DNA from: Piromyces finnis finn
Lineage: Eukaryota; Fungi; Neocallimastigomycota
Length of the DNA: 64,000 nucleotides
Direction of reading: 5' to 3'
Assembly: GCA_002104945.1 (NCBI GenBank)
Contig: MCFH01000038.1
Coordinates: 124,001-188,000 of the forward strand
Position numbers and translations under genes: made by a program. This document shows, piece by piece, positions 6,140 to 45,978 of the stretch. Each line of letters opens with the position of its first letter. Position 1 is the first letter of the stretch. The notes beneath the pieces were generated by a model. That model was not told the DNA's origin. It was given only the letters and a program-made list of their open reading frames with translations, and ran no database searches.

Positions 6140-9100
6140 TTAGTAACGATAATATTTAATAGAACTGGTGAGTTGGGGAACATCAGCATTTTGTTTTTGA
6201 CGATTAGAAATGTTTTTCATGAGTTGCATAAAAAGTTTATTAGAACTAGCATAATATACAAAATCATGTTTTTTATTATCTTTAATATGGGTATCAGCAT
6301 TTTTAAGAATTAATAATTTTATCACTTGTTGATATCTTTCTATACGATGTCCATCCTCTATTTTGTTCATAATCTTTATAGCTTTCACAAGTGCTGTTTC
6401 TAAATGATTATTCTGAATATTACAATTAGCATGAAGATAAAGAAGGGATTTTACAATTTTTGGTTGGCCACTACGTGAGGCAATAATTAAAGCAGTATCA
6501 CCGTCATTATTAGTTTCATCTAAAGAAATAAAACTGTAGGGAAGAATAAGATCTTCGCATTGACGCATATTTAATTTGTTCTTTTTTCGAAGTGAAAGCG
6601 CCTTCACAATATTACGATTTGTGACATAAATACTAGAAAATTCTAATAATAATTGTGCCATATCTTCATGATGTGATAAACTAGATACCCACATTAATGC
6701 AGTATTGCCTTCTCCATTTTTCAAATTAATATCTGCATGATGGAATAAAAGTTGACGAACAATATCTTGATGATTATTAAAAGCTGAAATATGAAGAGCT
6801 GAATTACCTGCATTATTTCTAATATTAACATTTAAAGATTGGTTATTAAGAAATTCTTGAACAATGTCTGTGTATTCATATTTTTTCTGACATAGATATA
6901 TGAGTGCTGTATTTCCATTACGATCTTGTATATCCATATCAAGAGGTTGTTTTATAAGAATACGAATAATTTCTTCGTTAACGTGACGACAAGCAATAAT
7001 TAATGCTGTTTCACCTCTATTATTTTTGATATCTGTATTAGCACAATAACGCAAAAGTAATTGTATTGCCCTAACACAGCCATAACGAGAGGCTATAGTT
7101 AATGCAGTATCACCATTCTTATCTTGACGATTAACTCGAGCACGATTCTCCAATAACAAACGAATAATATCTATATTATCATTTTTGCAGGCTAACATTA
7201 ATGCGGTTAAACCATTATTATCTTGAAAATTAATATTAGAATGATATTCTAAAAGCTGCTTTACAATACCATCTTCTTGTTTTTCACATGAATACATTAA
7301 TGCTGTTTTACCGAGATAATCTCTGGTATTAACGCTCGTACCATATTTTAATAAAATTGGGACAACTTGTCTTAATTTATAAATACAAGCAATTATTAAT
7401 GAAGTACGACCATCTAAATCTTGAATATTAGGATCAGCATCATTCCAGAGAAGAGTTTCTAACATTGTTAAATACTTTGATGCTTTTTGACGAGTTGACT
7501 CGGTACCTGGTTGATCATTTTCATTTATTAGACCTTTATGGAAAGGAATATGTGATATAGTATTACGTTTTTGTCGATTAAGATCACTAGATAAAGTGCC
7601 AGTACCAGATGTGAAACCATTATATCCTGTAAATCCAACAATCTGGGATTGTTTTCTACTTTCCCTTATACCATTATATAATCTATTCGCTGGTGAGTAT
7701 CCAATTCTATTATATGGAGAAAATGGATGATAAGCTATATAACGGTTTTTGATTCGATTTGCATCTAATGTACTTAGCGTTTCAGATCGAGAAGGTTTTC
7801 TTAGCATAGTATCAATAGAAAAACTATCATATGGTATAATACTTTCGGAAAAGGATATATTATCAATTTCGTTTAAATTAATATTACTTTTGCTATAAAA
7901 ATCTCTTGTATAAAAGTCTCTCTTATTTTGGCTTTTCATTTCTAAGGGAAGACTTTCAAATTCAGAATAAGAACTTGAAAATGAATATGATTCGGAATCC
8001 GAGTAATAACTACTTCTTGTTTGAAAAGATTTTTTATCATCTTCATCATCAGATAATATAATAACATTAATATTATGACTATTATCTTCAAATGATTGTG
8101 ATTGAGGAAAATTATTTTTATCATTTACATTAGTAAATGGTTTCGTATCTGAAGTAATGTCAGAATTATTTTTATTATTATAATTTTCTGAATTTAAACC
8201 TGCATCTGAATGAGAAGTAGAATTCACTTCATTATTCATATAAGTAGTTGTGATAGTATTTATAGCATTACTATCATTAGTATTTGTGTTCGTGATAGAA
8301 TTAATTCTGGTGTTAGTATTTGTGTCGTTGTCAATGTTTACATCATTAATATTATTATTAATGTCGTTATTTTTTATGTTATTACTGGTATTTATATTAG
8401 GGTTATTATTATTATACGAATTTACATTTAATTCTTTGTTATCACTTGACTTACTTCTAGTAAATGTAAACTTACGTTGTAATTTTTTACTAAGATCACG
8501 CTTTGATATACCAACAGCATGAATACCTGGTGAAAATGTGAATTTGTGTTTAAGTTTTTTTTCACTTATTGAATCATTATTATTATTTGTAACAACTTCA
8601 ATGTTAGCGACAGTAGGAGTCCCTGATAATCTATTTGCATTAAATATATTATCATTTTTTTCGTTTGGTGAACCAACGTCTCTTAAGGTTATAGAACTAA
8701 CACTTGAACTTGAAAGAAGTGATGATGATGAACTACTTTTATTAATTTTTGTTTCTTTTATTCCTTTACCAATTTCTTTATTACAGTTTTTGTTGAACTC
8801 CTCTTCTAATGATGACTCGATTTCTAATGAACTGAACGAAATACTTTTAGATACCAGAAAATTTTTACGATTATTTGTTTCCGTTGCTGTTATTTTTGTT
8901 GTATTATCACTTTCATATGTATTACTATAACTACTACTACTATTAATATTACTATCATACTTCTTTTTAAGATTATTATTTGAAATATTTTTTCTTTTAA
9001 TAGTATTATTGGCTTCTAAATTATTGTTTTCATCTGAACAAGATAATGATTCTACTAATTTTATTACCGATTTTGAATTTGAAATTATATTTGATTTTGA

Positions 9101-38926: not shown

Positions 38927-39778
38927 ATGTCACAATCATCTTATCCATACAATGGTATGTACTATGCCCCAAATTTATTCCAAAATCAGCAAATGCAATC
39001 AGCCTCACCAAGACTTGATTCTCCAGCAATATTAGGAAGTAATTCACCATATTATTCCATTCTTCAACAACAACAACAACAACAACAGCAAATAATGTCT
39101 TCACCACATCAAATGCAATATACTAGTATAAACAATTCAATGGCAAATGGTAATATTAATCCTACACACTTAAGTAGTATAGCCAATAATTCAAACTCAA
39201 AAAATATACATATTCAAAAGCAATTGGAATTAGCAAAAAAATCAAGAAATTCTTCATCACCACATCATAATGCCAGAGTGGCGGCTGCTGTAGCTCGAGC
39301 TTCTAACTCTACACATGGAAATAATAATAGTAATAATAGTAATAGTAGTAATAATTCAGAAAAGGAAGATAAACAATGGACTGTACTTGATTTCGGTGGC
39401 ATGGCTATCAAAAATATCAGTTTAGAACTTTTTAAATATACATTTTTAACTACATTATACTTAAATCATAATAAATTATTATTTATTCCACCAGAAATTT
39501 CAAATTTAAAAAATCTTAATGTCTTAGATATATCAGGAAACAAGTTAACTTTTCTTCCACCGGAAATGGGTCTTCTTCCTGAACTAAAAGAATTATATAT
39601 GTTTGATAATATAATAGCTGAACTTCCAAATGAATTTGGATTTTTATTTAAATTAGAAATCCTTGGTATAGAAGGTAATCCAATTAATGAAAAAATTGTT
39701 CAACATCTTCAACAAGATGGTACTCAAGGTGTTATAGTATATTTAAGAGATAAATGTCAAGGTAATACTAAAATTTAC

Positions 39779-39816
<38 letters not shown>

Positions 39817-40578
39817 TATATAAAAATAAATAAGATAGAATAATTTTGTATTGAAAATAGAAAAATTCTTATCTACATAATATATATATATATATCAAAT
39901 TAGAAAAGATTATTAATAAATAATTCTTATTTTAATAATAAATAGTACCACGTCCACCAGAAAAAAGAAAATGGATTTCTTTTGATGATGAACAAATGAT
40001 GGGTATATATATATATTTTTTTAATAAACAATAAAATTAAAATTCGGTTTTTTAATTAATTTTTCAACAAAATACTAATATTACAAATCATACAAATTAA
40101 ACAGATGACAGATATCTTGTAATGACATACAATGTTCTTTGTGATAAATATGCTTCTGCACAAACTTATGCTTATACTCCATCATGGGTTCTAAATTGGG
40201 AAAATAGAAGTAAAAAAATAATTAAGGAAATTTTAGAATTTAGTCCAGATATTGTTTGCCTTCAAGTAAGTTTAAAAATCATTAGATGAATAATTTAACA
40301 TTATATATATTTTAAGGTAGACTAAAATATTCTAATTAATCACACATCCATATATAAAAATATTTGAATATTTAAATAACAACAGGAAGTGGAAATGGGT
40401 CAATTCGATGAATTTTTCAAACCACAATTAAGTGAGTATAACGGTGTATTTTGGCCAAAATCAAGAGCAAAGACAATGCAAGAATCTGAAAAGAAAAGTG
40501 TTGATGGTTGTGCTACTTTCTATAAAAAAGAAAGGTATATAAAATTATAAATAGTTTATTTTCAAAATAATTAATATA

Positions 40579-40617
<39 letters not shown>

Positions 40618-41564
40618 TGATGATGATGATGATAATAATAATGATAATAATGATAATAATAAATTTATTAACAATAATTAAAATATTTATCTTTTTTTTT
40701 TTTCTATTTTCTTTTCTTTTTAAATCTTTTTAATAATATTAAATACATTTCTTGGTAAATTTCAATTCAATAATTTAAAGATTTAATTTAATTGAAAAAG
40801 ATTTAATAGAATTTAATCAAACAGCTTCACAGAAACCAGAATACAGGAAATATGAAGACGTATATAATAGAGTAATGCTAAAAGATAATATTGCTGTTGT
40901 AACCTTATTAGAAGATAAAAAAACAAATTTATGCTTAATAGTAGCAAATACACATCTTCACTGGGATCCAGCCTTTAAGGATGTTAAATTAGTACAAGCT
41001 GCAATATTGATTGAAGAAATTGAGAAATATAGTGAACTTTATATGAAGCGTCCATTACGTCAACAATTTACTAAATATTTACAAAATGATGTTACTCGTT
41101 TTCCATTGCTTGTATGTGGTGATTTCAACTCAGAAGAAGATTCTGGTGTATATGAATTCCTATCAAAGGCAAAGATTTCACCAGATCATGAAGATTATTT
41201 AGGACATTCTTATGGTACTGAAGAGGTTACCCATAAATTCCAATTAAAATCAGCTTATCTTGAAATCGATGATTTAGAATTTACAAACTATACCCCAGGA
41301 TTTAAGGGTGTACTTGATTATATATGGTACACCTCTAATACTATAAAGGTTACTGCTGCCTTAGGGGGTATTGATAAAAATTATATGAAGAAGGTTGTTG
41401 GTTTCCCAGAATTCCACTTCCCAAGTGATCATATTCCATTAATAACCCAAATAAAAATAAAAAATCAAATACCTCCACATCTAAATCAAGGCTCCATGAA
41501 TAGACAAGCACAAGCTGTTCAACAACAAACAGCACAACAAAGAAGACAGATGAATATGAAGTAG
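38927..41564 (+). CDS. CCR4: CCR4-NOT deadenylase subunit Ccr4 (LRR + EEP nuclease), 5 exons
   Basis: Q-rich N-terminus, LRRs ([16 protein letters not shown]), [45 protein letters not shown] and FPSDH. Confidence 0.95.
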
Positions 41565-42571
41565 AAGGGAAAGAGACCTTATTCAATAAATAAAAAAAAA
41601 GCCATTATTACATAAATAATAAATATTTTTGTTTTATCCAAAAGTAATAATAATATAATAGTAATATTAATAAATAATAATAACGATAATAGTAAAATAT
41701 ATATATATATTTTTTTTTTCATTAAAGTCATTAGTAAATTATAAATATTAAAAAATAATTTTTTTTTTTTTTCATATATTACATTAATTTAAAAAAAAAA
41801 AAAATAAAAAGAAATAAAATTTAAAAATATAAATAAAGTTAAATTTTTAAATATTAATTGATTTAAATATTTAATATTAATTTAATTGATATAATAATAG
41901 ATAATTATAATTTAAAAAAAAAACGAAAGAAAAAAAAATTGAAAAGTAACCTTTATTTAAATATTGATTTTTGTAAAAATGTAAAAATTAAATTCTTTTA
42001 TATATATATATATATAATATGAAAAAGAAAAACATTTCAATAGTCAGCATAGAAAAATAATATTATAAAAAAATGTAAAAGATAAATAATATAATTAATA
42101 TATTTACTTTTACCTTTACATCTATTACCATAAATTAATACCAATCATTACACAAAAAATTAAAACAAAAAAAAAAAAAATAATAAATAAAAATAAAATA
42201 TAATAAAATATAAAATATATATGTTAATATATTCAATGGTAAAACAGAGTACGGTTTATATATATATATATTAATTTATTATACTTTAAAAAATGTCTAA
42301 ATAATTAAATAAATAGTTATATTTAAAAATAATAATAAAAATAAATTTATTTTATAGTGTAATGTATTAAAAATTATGAAGGTATCTAAAATAAAAATGA
42401 ATTATGAATTGATATATTTATTTTTGAAACTAAATCCAAAATTCAATATTATTTTTATTTAAATCAAATTTTTGATAAATAGTCGAAAAAGTATGATCAT
42501 TCACTTGATATATTGAAATCCGTCTAGAAAAATGATTTCTGTATTTTCCATTAATTTATATGATTTATGAT

Positions 42572-44310
42572 TTATTCATCCATTTCATCATCTTCGGTAG
42601 CACCAAACTTTACACGCTTATTCACATTAAACTTTGGAGGTAATATCATTAAAAAAAAAAAAAAAAAAGTTAAAGATATTAAATTGTAATTAAATTTATG
42701 TATAGATATAAATAATATTATAAATATAAAAAAGGATATTTTTTGAAAAGCTTTTATCAGTTTTTTCTCTAATAGCTTCAATACTATCGTCATCCTCAGC
42801 CCATTCAAGAACTAAGTGTCTACCGTACAAGTGAGTATTGGTAAGATTTTCAAATACATTCTTAGCTTCTTGTTTAGTTAAGAAATCGATAAAACCGAAA
42901 CCACGATGAGAACCGTCAAATTTCTTTGGTAAACGAAGAGATTTGATTTGACCATAAGTACTATTTTATTTATAAACATACATATATATATATTATTCAT
43001 ATATATTAATAAAATTTTTTATATAAATTACTATTCAAATTTATATTAAATACAAATTATTAATTTCATTACCTAAATAATTCACGTAAATCCTTCTTAG
43101 TTGCTTCAAATGGAATATTTCTAACAATTAACTTGGTACTATTTGGTTCAATATGCTTATCAAACTTTCTCTTATTATTGTTATTATTTGTGGAAGATGC
43201 ACCGTGTGAGAATTTTAATGATAATGCGTGACCATCTAATGCAAATCCCTTTTAATAAATATATAGAATAGAGTAATTTAATTAGTAATTATAAAGTTAG
43301 TCATTTATTTTTTTAATAAATGATTGGTTTTATTTCATTTTTCACTTACTTGCATAGATTTTAAAGCGCTCATAGCATTTTCTTTTGTATCAAATTCTAC
43401 AAAACCAAAACCCATTGATAATGGTTTACCTGTTTTCTTATTTGGTTTCATAGAAACACGAGCTGTTCTCATACCCTTTAAATGCTTAAAGGCTTTAGTT
43501 AAACCTTCAGTAGTAGTATCAAAGTTTAAGTTTTTAACAAACAAAGTAACATTATCAGATGAAATATCGTCATTATTTACAGCATTTACATCATGTGTAT
43601 CTTCCTTTAATACCTTTAGTGGAATTTTTTTAGCCTTAGATGGATCGAATTTATCCTTGAAAGTACCAATTGGAGCCCATTCTAAATATAATGGTAAATG
43701 TTTGAATTTTGTGAAAGCTAAATTACGGAATGCATTCTTTGCTTCATTTGGTTCTAAAAATTCAACTAATGCGATAGTCTTAGCTGGTGGTAAAACGATC
43801 TATAATAAACCAATGATATATTTATTGTCGTTGAAATGAGTTAATATTATAAATTAAAAAGTTTATGTATGTATTTTATTATTCTTCTTATTCTTATTAT
43901 TATTCTTATTACTATTAAATGATTAAAACTTACACGTCCTAAAGATCCAAACTTTGACCATAAATTATATAATTCTGATTCTTCTGTATTTGCTGGAATA
44001 TTCTTAACTAAAATTACAGTATTACTACGTTTTTTCTGACCTTGTTCAAAAGCATTTAATGAAACACCTTCCTATTGTCATTAAATTATATTTGAATGAT
44101 CAAACTAAATTAGTTATTTTAATCATTGATAGTTATTTAAAAAAACAATAAAGACTTACATCTTCTAAATATTTTTTTGTTTCATTAATAATGTGTGTTT
44201 CAGCAAGAGCAAGACGAACAGCCATATTATCAGCTTCTTTGTCTAAAATATCTGATTTTTGAACATCTAATTTTTGAGCCATAGATTGTGCAATTGAATC
44301 CATCTATTTT

Positions 44311-44343
<33 letters not shown>

Positions 44344-45978
44344 ATCAAAAAATGTATTAATATAATTTATTATTTACATATAGTATATATATTATTATAT
44401 TACTTACATTCATAAATAAAGAATTCCAGTTAAAGTCACTACCAGCTGAAGCCTTCTTTTTTAATAATTGTTGCTTCTTATATGGTGTATTTTCGTCTAT
44501 TTCTTCCTTTTTCATTGGCTTTTCTTTACCAGGTCTAATATCTAAAATTCTACCTTGGAAAATTTTACCATCCAAACTCATATAAGCATTAATTGCATGT
44601 TCTGGCAAAAGATATAAAATAAAGGCATAACCTCTTGATTGTTTGGTTTCCTTTGTTATAGGAATATGAATCTTTTTTTATAATAATTAATTATTAATTT
44701 ATATAACGATAATTATTTTTTATTTATATTTAAATACAAAAGAAAAAGTTATTAAATTGTATCCATTGAATTGATTAATAATATATATACCTCTGATAAT
44801 GGTCCGAATTTTTCAAATAAGTTTCTTAAATCATCTTCAGTACATGCAAAGGATAAATTTTTAACAAATAAACGTCCTGTATCAGCAATTAATTGTGCTG
44901 GTGGAATATTTTCTTCTTCTTCAACCTTTTTTTCCTTTTTTTTTCTCTTTTTATCAAGCATAGCATCAATATCCTTTTCTTCTTCATCATCGGAATCAAA
45001 TAAATCTACCTTTTTATCTGGTATAATTTCATTATCATCATTTCCTGCTTCCTTTTCTTTCTTATCGTCTTCGCTTTCGTCTTCATCATCATTACTATCA
45101 TCCTCGCTTTCATCTTCATCACTATCATCACTATCATCATTATCACTTGAATCATCACTTGAATCACTATCTTCATTACTACTTGATTCTTCACTACTAT
45201 CATTTTCATCATCATCATCATCTTTTTCTTCTTCTTCTTCTTCCTTCTAAATATATTTTAATTATTTTAATAAATAACAATTAAAGGATATTAAATATTT
45301 TATTATTACTACTTAAGTATTAATAATATGATTTCTCTTAGATAACACTATTCAATTCTTTTGCAATTTAATAAATATAATAAAATTACCTTTCTCATTT
45401 TTGAACGTAAGAAATCCATATGTGAGATTGTAGATTTCTTTTCGATTTCTGGATTATCTTCAATATCCATTTCATTATTGTCATTAATATCGTTTGATTC
45501 ATTTTTTTCTTCTTTATTTGATTCTTCAGTTTTTTTTGGAATATCTTCATATTCGTCATCAGAATCATCAAATGTTAAATGAGTTTTTGTTACTAATAAA
45601 CCTTCACCACCAGGTTTCTTATTTGGTACAGCAATTGCTTGGATTTTTGGTTTACCTCTTATAGTAGCGTCATCTTGTTTTGAGCCATCATCATTTGTCC
45701 ATGTTTTAGCATGTGAACGAGGTTTCATTACATTTAAATATTCTTGTAATTTTTCATCTGTTTCATCTCCGTAAATTTCAGATAAAAATTTTTTTTTTCT
45801 TTCTAATTCCTTTTCAACTTGAAGTTTATTTCTTTGACGTTTTTCTTCTTTTTCTCTTTCTATACGTTTTGCTTCATTTTCTTCATTTATTTTTTTCATA
45901 TATGCTGAACTACCTTGTGAATATTTACTCCAAGGTCTTACAAGTGTTGCATCACCAATCTTTATATATATTGTTTTA

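Follow-up and report, generated by a model that had tools for sequence, protein, structure and literature searches.

An AT-AC intron with U12-type signals and an unusually distant branch motif in the MRD1/RBM19 gene of the gut fungus Piromyces finnis

In animals and plants, AT-AC introns of the U12 type carry the signature ATATCC ... CCTTAAC ... AC; a spacing of about 10-20 nt between branch site and 3' end is usual, and a pyrimidine tract is usually absent. The major spliceosome, too, removes AT-AC introns of a small class; these U2-type AT-AC introns have the same AT and AC termini but neither the 5' ATATCC nor the branch CCTTAAC signal, two signals of the kind found in the last intron of the P. 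finnis MRD1/RBM19 gene. The MRD1 intron shares with the animal and plant U12-type introns its termini, the 9-nt 5' consensus and a phase other than zero, as well as a branch motif that is alike except for one C-to-T change, and its genome contains candidates for the whole set of minor snRNAs. It differs from them in a branch distance of 30 nt (38-59 nt in its orthologs) behind a long T tract, in a G+C content of 9%, and in the altered 5' splice-site pairing boxes of the P. finnis U6atac and U11 candidates.

Minor introns have been described in this lineage before. P. finnis is named among the species that possess them (Larue & Roy 2023, PMC10639083), and a survey that reports a well-defined constraint on the branch distance of minor introns lists 129 of them in Neocallimastix californiae, with U4atac only putative and divergent in the Neocallimastigomycota (Olthof et al. 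NAR 2024, PMC11347168). The MRD1 case resembles these published introns in species, phylum, intron kind and snRNAs; a working minor spliceosome in P. finnis and its phylum is already published, and the MRD1 intron is one verified instance. The text and parts of the supplements of these two papers hold no mention that we could find of the MRD1 intron, its conservation, the wrong public protein model, a well-paired U4atac or a long branch distance, and literature searches returned neither a further paper linking the minor spliceosome with Neocallimastix nor one linking RBM19 with a minor intron. What is new here is the corrected MRD1 gene model and the unusually distant branch signal, and the remaining interest lies in the long branch distance seen in four orthologs and in a single U6atac gene with a divergent 5' splice-site box.

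The MRD1/RBM19 locus and its last intron

The window analyzed is a stretch of 64,000 nucleotides with a G+C content of about 20%, taken from a P. finnis genome of 56.46 Mb in 232 contigs. Judging from sequence comparison, the minus-strand gene at approximately 45959-42572 is the ortholog of MRD1/RBM19. Its exons were searched singly, and L006, a natural metatranscript of a close relative, served as a stand-in for the full-length protein. The best PDB matches of the exons are RBM19 RRMs (2cph, E 4.8e-20; 2cpf; 1whx), full-length homologues are named MRD1 or RBM19, the L006 open reading frame contains at least four RRM_1 stretches, and the last RRM and the EWA tail match RBM19/Mrd1. The features discussed below are the following, in window coordinates.

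42450..45959, minus strand: MRD1/RBM19 gene, as covered by transcript contigs and named from its homologues
~45959 to 42572, minus strand: MRD1/RBM19 coding span
42740..42960, minus strand: penultimate exon, encoding the second half of the last RRM and 22 more residues (2cph match, E 4.8e-20; limits from transcript contigs)
42640..42739, minus strand: U12-type AT-AC intron, the last of MRD1, 100 nt, phase 1 (sequence and contigs of runs X1, X2 and X3)
42731..42739, minus strand: 5' splice site ATATCCTTT, with further T after it (sequence; identical in A. robustus, L093 and L097)
42696..42698, minus strand: stop codon met on intron retention, at which the public P. finnis model ends
42669..42676, minus strand: branch-site motif TCTTTAAC (consensus TCCTTAAC), intron positions 64-71, 29 nt to the intron end
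42651..42668, minus strand: T18 tract between branch motif and 3' splice site (sequence)
42640..42643, minus strand: 3' splice site TTAC, the first AC 3' of the branch motif (sequence and transcripts)
42572..42639, minus strand: coding part of the last exon, (T) plus 21 residues, stop at 42572..42574 (transcript contigs)

The 3' UTR reaches at least to 42450, and all five of the other MRD1 introns with a listed joint in the transcript contigs are GT-AG on the gene strand. One of these, at 43800-43933 (minus strand), shows a depth of about 71 in X1 versus 2-8 in X2-X4, a pattern that points to intron-retaining contigs in a single study. Tail-to-tail with MRD1 lies a plus-strand neighbor (38927-41564) whose ORF translations resemble an LRR region followed by an endonuclease/exonuclease/phosphatase part (CCR4-like); it thus looks similar to the downstream neighbor of A. 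robustus MRD1, also on the opposite strand, which is an LRR and Exo_endo_phos gene with CCR4-like domains.

The AT-AC intron begins with ATATCCTTTTTT and ends with AATGATATTAC (...ATTAC); its G+C content is 9%, and it contains a single G, no GT and no AG. Unspliced, the reading frame continues for 14 codons into the intron and stops at 42698..42696, while removal of 100 nt restores the frame in phase 1 and yields a tail of ~22-23 residues that stops at 42574..42572. Located exactly at the transcript-defined exon boundary, ATATCCTTT conforms to the U12-type 5' splice-site pattern [A/G]TATCCTT and matches the consensus at nine of nine positions, and the branch motif TCTTTAAC agrees closely with TCCTTAAC. 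On its own the ATATCCTTT 9-mer does not exceed chance, with five matches in the window versus 3.3 expected; the sites at 7858, 28258, 44969 and 45291 were set aside as chance matches, located within coding sequence or a GT-AG intron. An exact exon boundary, a branch motif, a terminal AC and a restored reading frame are nonetheless found together here, a combination far above chance. The original prediction, made from the letters alone, had proposed a U12-type AT-AC intron at 42640-42739, on the grounds that no GT donor was available and that a branch motif, an 18-nt T run, a branch distance of about 30 nt and an AC end were discernible; each of these details is present in the sequence where it had been placed, and the exact 100-nt excision by which it recovered the frame and the C-terminus coincides with the transcript junction.

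The original prediction had called for a comparison with Mrd1/RBM19 orthologs. In genomic DNA, an AT-AC intron interrupts the same codon position in A. robustus (L086) and in L093 and L097, which represent two metagenomic gut fungi.

P. finnis (window): 100 nt; 5' ATATCCTTTTTT; branch TCTTTAAC; 29 nt after the motif; tail 76% T; TTAC
A. robustus (L086): 140 nt; 5' ATATCCTTTTAT; branch TCCTTAAC; 37 nt after the motif; tail 70% T; TTAC
L093: 222 nt; 5' ATATCCTTTTTT; branch CCCTTAAC; 39 nt after the motif; tail 74% T; TTAC
L097: 135 nt; 5' ATATCCTTTTTT; branch TCCTTAAC; 58 nt after the motif; tail 78% T; TTAC

A ATATCCTTTT start, a [TC]C[CT]TTAAC motif and a TTAC end are common to all four orthologous introns, and the chance of encountering a motif of this type in one AT-rich intron of such size is ~0.006, as estimated from intron base composition. 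No intron was found at this MRD1 site in Spizellomyces punctatus, Basidiobolus meristosporus, Phycomyces blakesleeanus or Amborella, nor in several long metagenomic contigs (other eukaryotes). On the taxa sampled, the intron thus appears to be confined to the Neocallimastigomycota, reflecting either a gain or an ancestral presence followed by repeated loss.

Among metagenome contigs of one gut-fungus species, L092 harbors a 119-nt version of the 222-nt L093 intron from which the block comprising poly-A, branch motif and poly-T is missing. Five sister contigs of L092 and L093 break at the intron poly-A, and for this reason the short intron is suspected to be an assembly collapse; it may also be a natural deletion variant.

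Position of the branch site

The short branch distance and the lack of a pyrimidine tract that are usual in U12-type introns are not seen at this locus: the distance is 30 nt in P. finnis and 38, 40 and 59 nt in the orthologs, and the intron tails of all four are 70-78% T, with no AC or AG ahead of the terminal AC. The distance rule would be kept if the intron were U12-type but branched within the 3'-proximal TTTTTAATGA, at an adenosine ~10 nt before the intron end, with G-U wobbles in the pairing to U12. Such pairing is possible in principle between UUUUUAAU and GUAAGGA, the final ~12 nt (ATGAT.TTAC) are alike in P. finnis and A. robustus, and the shorter L092 intron lacks the distal motif. 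Nevertheless, the predicted duplex of the U12 candidate with the proximal site is weak (-2.8 kcal/mol, versus -7.9 kcal/mol with the distal TCTTTAAC), no adenosine is conserved at one 3'-near position across the four orthologs, whose sole conserved internal block is the distal motif, and L092 may have collapsed in assembly across its T/A runs. We therefore regard a proximal branch as unlikely. Since TTTTTAATGA pairs poorly and lacks an adenosine conserved across orthologs, these predictions favor the distal motif as the branch, with the first AC downstream of it as the acceptor.

A genome-wide search for the pattern ATATCCTT...TCCTTAAC returned 35 matches versus 28 for the reversed control, indicating that the pattern alone cannot count minor introns. 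Among 30 matches examined, a filter for phase-consistent open frames on both sides, applied to the unjoined sequences, left 10-16 plausible introns on the strength of genomic sequence alone. The ten strict candidates (L098, L099, L101, L114, L116, L117, L118, L120, L124 and L125 of G000, with L118 on the contig of the window) are likely to be further AT-AC minor introns; in them, the first AC or AG follows the branch motif at distances of 10, 11, 12, 12, 12, 17, 28, 42, 63 and 81 nt. Canonical and long branch spacings hence seem to coexist in the P. finnis genome.

Candidate components of the minor spliceosome

The existence of U11, U12, U4atac and U6atac in this genome had been proposed together with the intron. 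A search of the P. finnis genome with Rfam models supplied one candidate for each of the four, with those for U11 and U4atac falling 1-4 bits under their cut-offs.

U12 candidate: 66.6 bits, above the Rfam cut-off of 53
U6atac candidate: 52.1 bits, above the Rfam cut-off of 33; L002:1501-1649 (G000 C112:211500-211648, +)
U11 candidate: 38.2 bits, 0.8 bit below the Rfam cut-off of 39; L003:1501-1615 (G000 C152:317514-317628, +)
U4atac candidate: 49.2 bits, below the Rfam cut-off of 53; L004:1501-1639 (G000 C90:253883-254011, +)

The U12 candidate retains GUAAGGA and the Sm site, and the U11 candidate retains the AUCAAGA loop and the Sm site. Approximately 550 nt downstream of the latter, on the other strand, lies a SNORD14-like box C/D RNA (L003:2162-2325; 52 bits versus a cut-off of 64). 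In the U4atac candidate, CGUCCUUAUCU is the exact complement of AGAUAAGGACG in U6atac, with GGGAU/AUCCC next to it, so that stem II of the U4atac/U6atac pair comprises 11 bp plus 5 bp. The predicted duplex energy is -37.2 kcal/mol, versus -23.7 +/- 4.2 kcal/mol for shuffled sequences, of which 2 in 500 reach -37.2 kcal/mol. This complementarity and the duplex score lend support to the U4atac candidate, and the pairing has presumably been kept by compensatory changes on both sides relative to human.

In contrast to this intact pairing with U4atac, the U6atac gene reads GUAUGAGCCGAGAGA where the consensus is GUAUGAAAGGAGAGA (over a longer stretch, GAGCCGAGAGA versus GAAAGGAGAGA), with GCC for AAG at positions 12-14, so that three of the bases that should pair with CCUUU of the 5' splice site are changed. 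No second U6atac gene was detected, as a BLAST search of the genome with the candidate matched only the candidate itself; four genomic occurrences of TGAAAGGAGAGA, considered as possible copies with a canonical box, turned out not to be snRNA genes. The U11 candidate, in turn, starts with AAGAAAAGUUUU rather than AAAAAGGGCU, presenting one G where three are usual. As read from these candidate genes, the changes in U6atac and U11 would both take away G residues that should pair with the CC in ATATCC, and the introns still keep ATATCCTTTT. Textbook pairing of U6atac and U11 with the 5' splice site is accordingly predicted to be weak.

A search for minor-spliceosome proteins had been suggested by the original prediction. 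Two adjacent exons at locus L005 correspond to the ubiquitin-like domain of SNRNP25 (PF18036), one matching its first half and the next its second, and provide an SNRNP25-type gene. A U11-48K-like CHHC zinc finger occurs once, although this family is not specific. PDCD7/59K (PF16021) had no match in the genome, a weak negative given that the control likewise returned no match.

Removal of the intron by the major (U2-type) spliceosome would be in keeping with the long T tract ahead of the 3' end, as in U2-type introns, and with the divergent 5' splice-site boxes of U6atac and U11. However, all nine positions of ATATCCTTT follow the U12-type consensus rather than that of U2-type AT-AC introns, the four orthologous introns have kept a branch motif of the CCTTAAC type, and the genome encodes the minor snRNA candidates and the SNRNP25-type gene; we consider removal by the major spliceosome very improbable. 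The interval 42739..42640 is, with high confidence, predicted to be a genuine U12-dependent (minor-spliceosome) AT-AC intron, the last of MRD1/RBM19. In the splicing pathway that we envisage for it, U11 would bind ATATCCTTTT and U12 would pair with TCTTTAAC, leaving the branch adenosine bulged; U4atac/U6atac.U5 would then take the place of U11, and the TTAAC branch adenosine would attack the 5' site. The 3' splice site would be the first AC after the branch, ~30 nt on; the intervening T18 spacer contains neither an AC nor an AG that could compete with it.

Transcripts, gene models and implications

Four public runs (X1-X4) contained about two thirds of the sampled MRD1 words; they consist of assembled contigs, not raw reads, and splicing efficiency and retention are consequently not readable from their depths. 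The contigs extend to ~3 kb with every intron spliced, which identifies them as transcripts. In contigs of X1, X2 and X3, from three studies, 42740 is joined directly to 42639, the very adjacency by which the original prediction had proposed to check the intron. In X1, 42740-42960 corresponds to record positions 2586-2806 and the piece ending at 42639 to 2807-2996; in X3, the same two pieces occupy record positions 150-370 and 1-149. Furthermore, in each of the four runs the depth in the bin 42572-42693 is 68/122 of that of the contigs, the value given by exon-only coverage, which implies that the 3' half of the intron is uncovered. Some extra depth is present in X1 in the bin 42694-42815.

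The intron is preceded by A and its last base is C, whereas its first base is A and the base following it is C. Because these flanking bases differ, the junction cannot slide, and the termini supported by the contigs of the three studies are AT and AC. The L006 metatranscript presents the identical junction, with TCAAAAA joined to CTCCAAAG; over the penultimate exon, L006 has 99% protein identity with P. finnis and many synonymous differences. An artefact, be it cDNA template switching, an assembly error or a deletion variant of the genome, is scarcely credible. In its favor it could be said that the runs are assembled contigs only and that the joint is missing from the joints table of the contig alignment, because of the T run; but the two boundaries show no microhomology, the junction recurs in three studies and in the transcript of another species (L006), and the restored frame yields a tail conserved in relatives. 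Mature transcripts lack exactly these 100 nt.

As the original prediction had anticipated for gene models at this locus, the public P. finnis protein P0002 (NCBI "RNA-binding domain-containing protein [Piromyces finnis]", 907 aa) reads into the intron and ends in the read-through frame of the window; the C-terminus of this MRD1 model is wrong, being translated intron. The Orpinomyces sp. model P0003, which ends in ...KNFSKNILF..., contains an equal read-through error, and its ending in translated intron points to the same 5' site in Orpinomyces. The A. robustus model P0001, on the other hand, is spliced correctly and carries the true tail, beginning with (T). This last-exon tail, also found in L006, is basic and then acidic, and protein comparison shows it to be conserved in chytrids and Mucorales as well. 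Retention of the intron would, as had been foreseen from the sequence, exchange the C-terminus of the protein: 14 codons would be translated before the stop, replacing the ~22-23-residue basic/acidic tail. Since this is the last intron of the gene, the retained-intron mRNA would probably escape nonsense-mediated decay.

The MRD1 models of P. finnis and Orpinomyces hence need correction, and the MRD1 locus provides a transcript-verified minor intron, conserved in four taxa, that is usable as a positive control in an AT-rich genome. Beyond this locus, we tentatively raise the possibility, which we hold to be somewhat less probable than its converse, that the minor spliceosome of gut fungi is relaxed, accepting branch sites separated from the 3' splice site by 30-80 nt with expandable T tracts, together with the first AC that follows, and that its U6atac and U11 have lost most of the G residues that read the CC. 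If this were true, recognition of the 5' splice site would rely to a greater degree on proteins or the T run that follows ATATCC, and, if general, it would show how far the rigid signals of minor introns can drift at 20% G+C.
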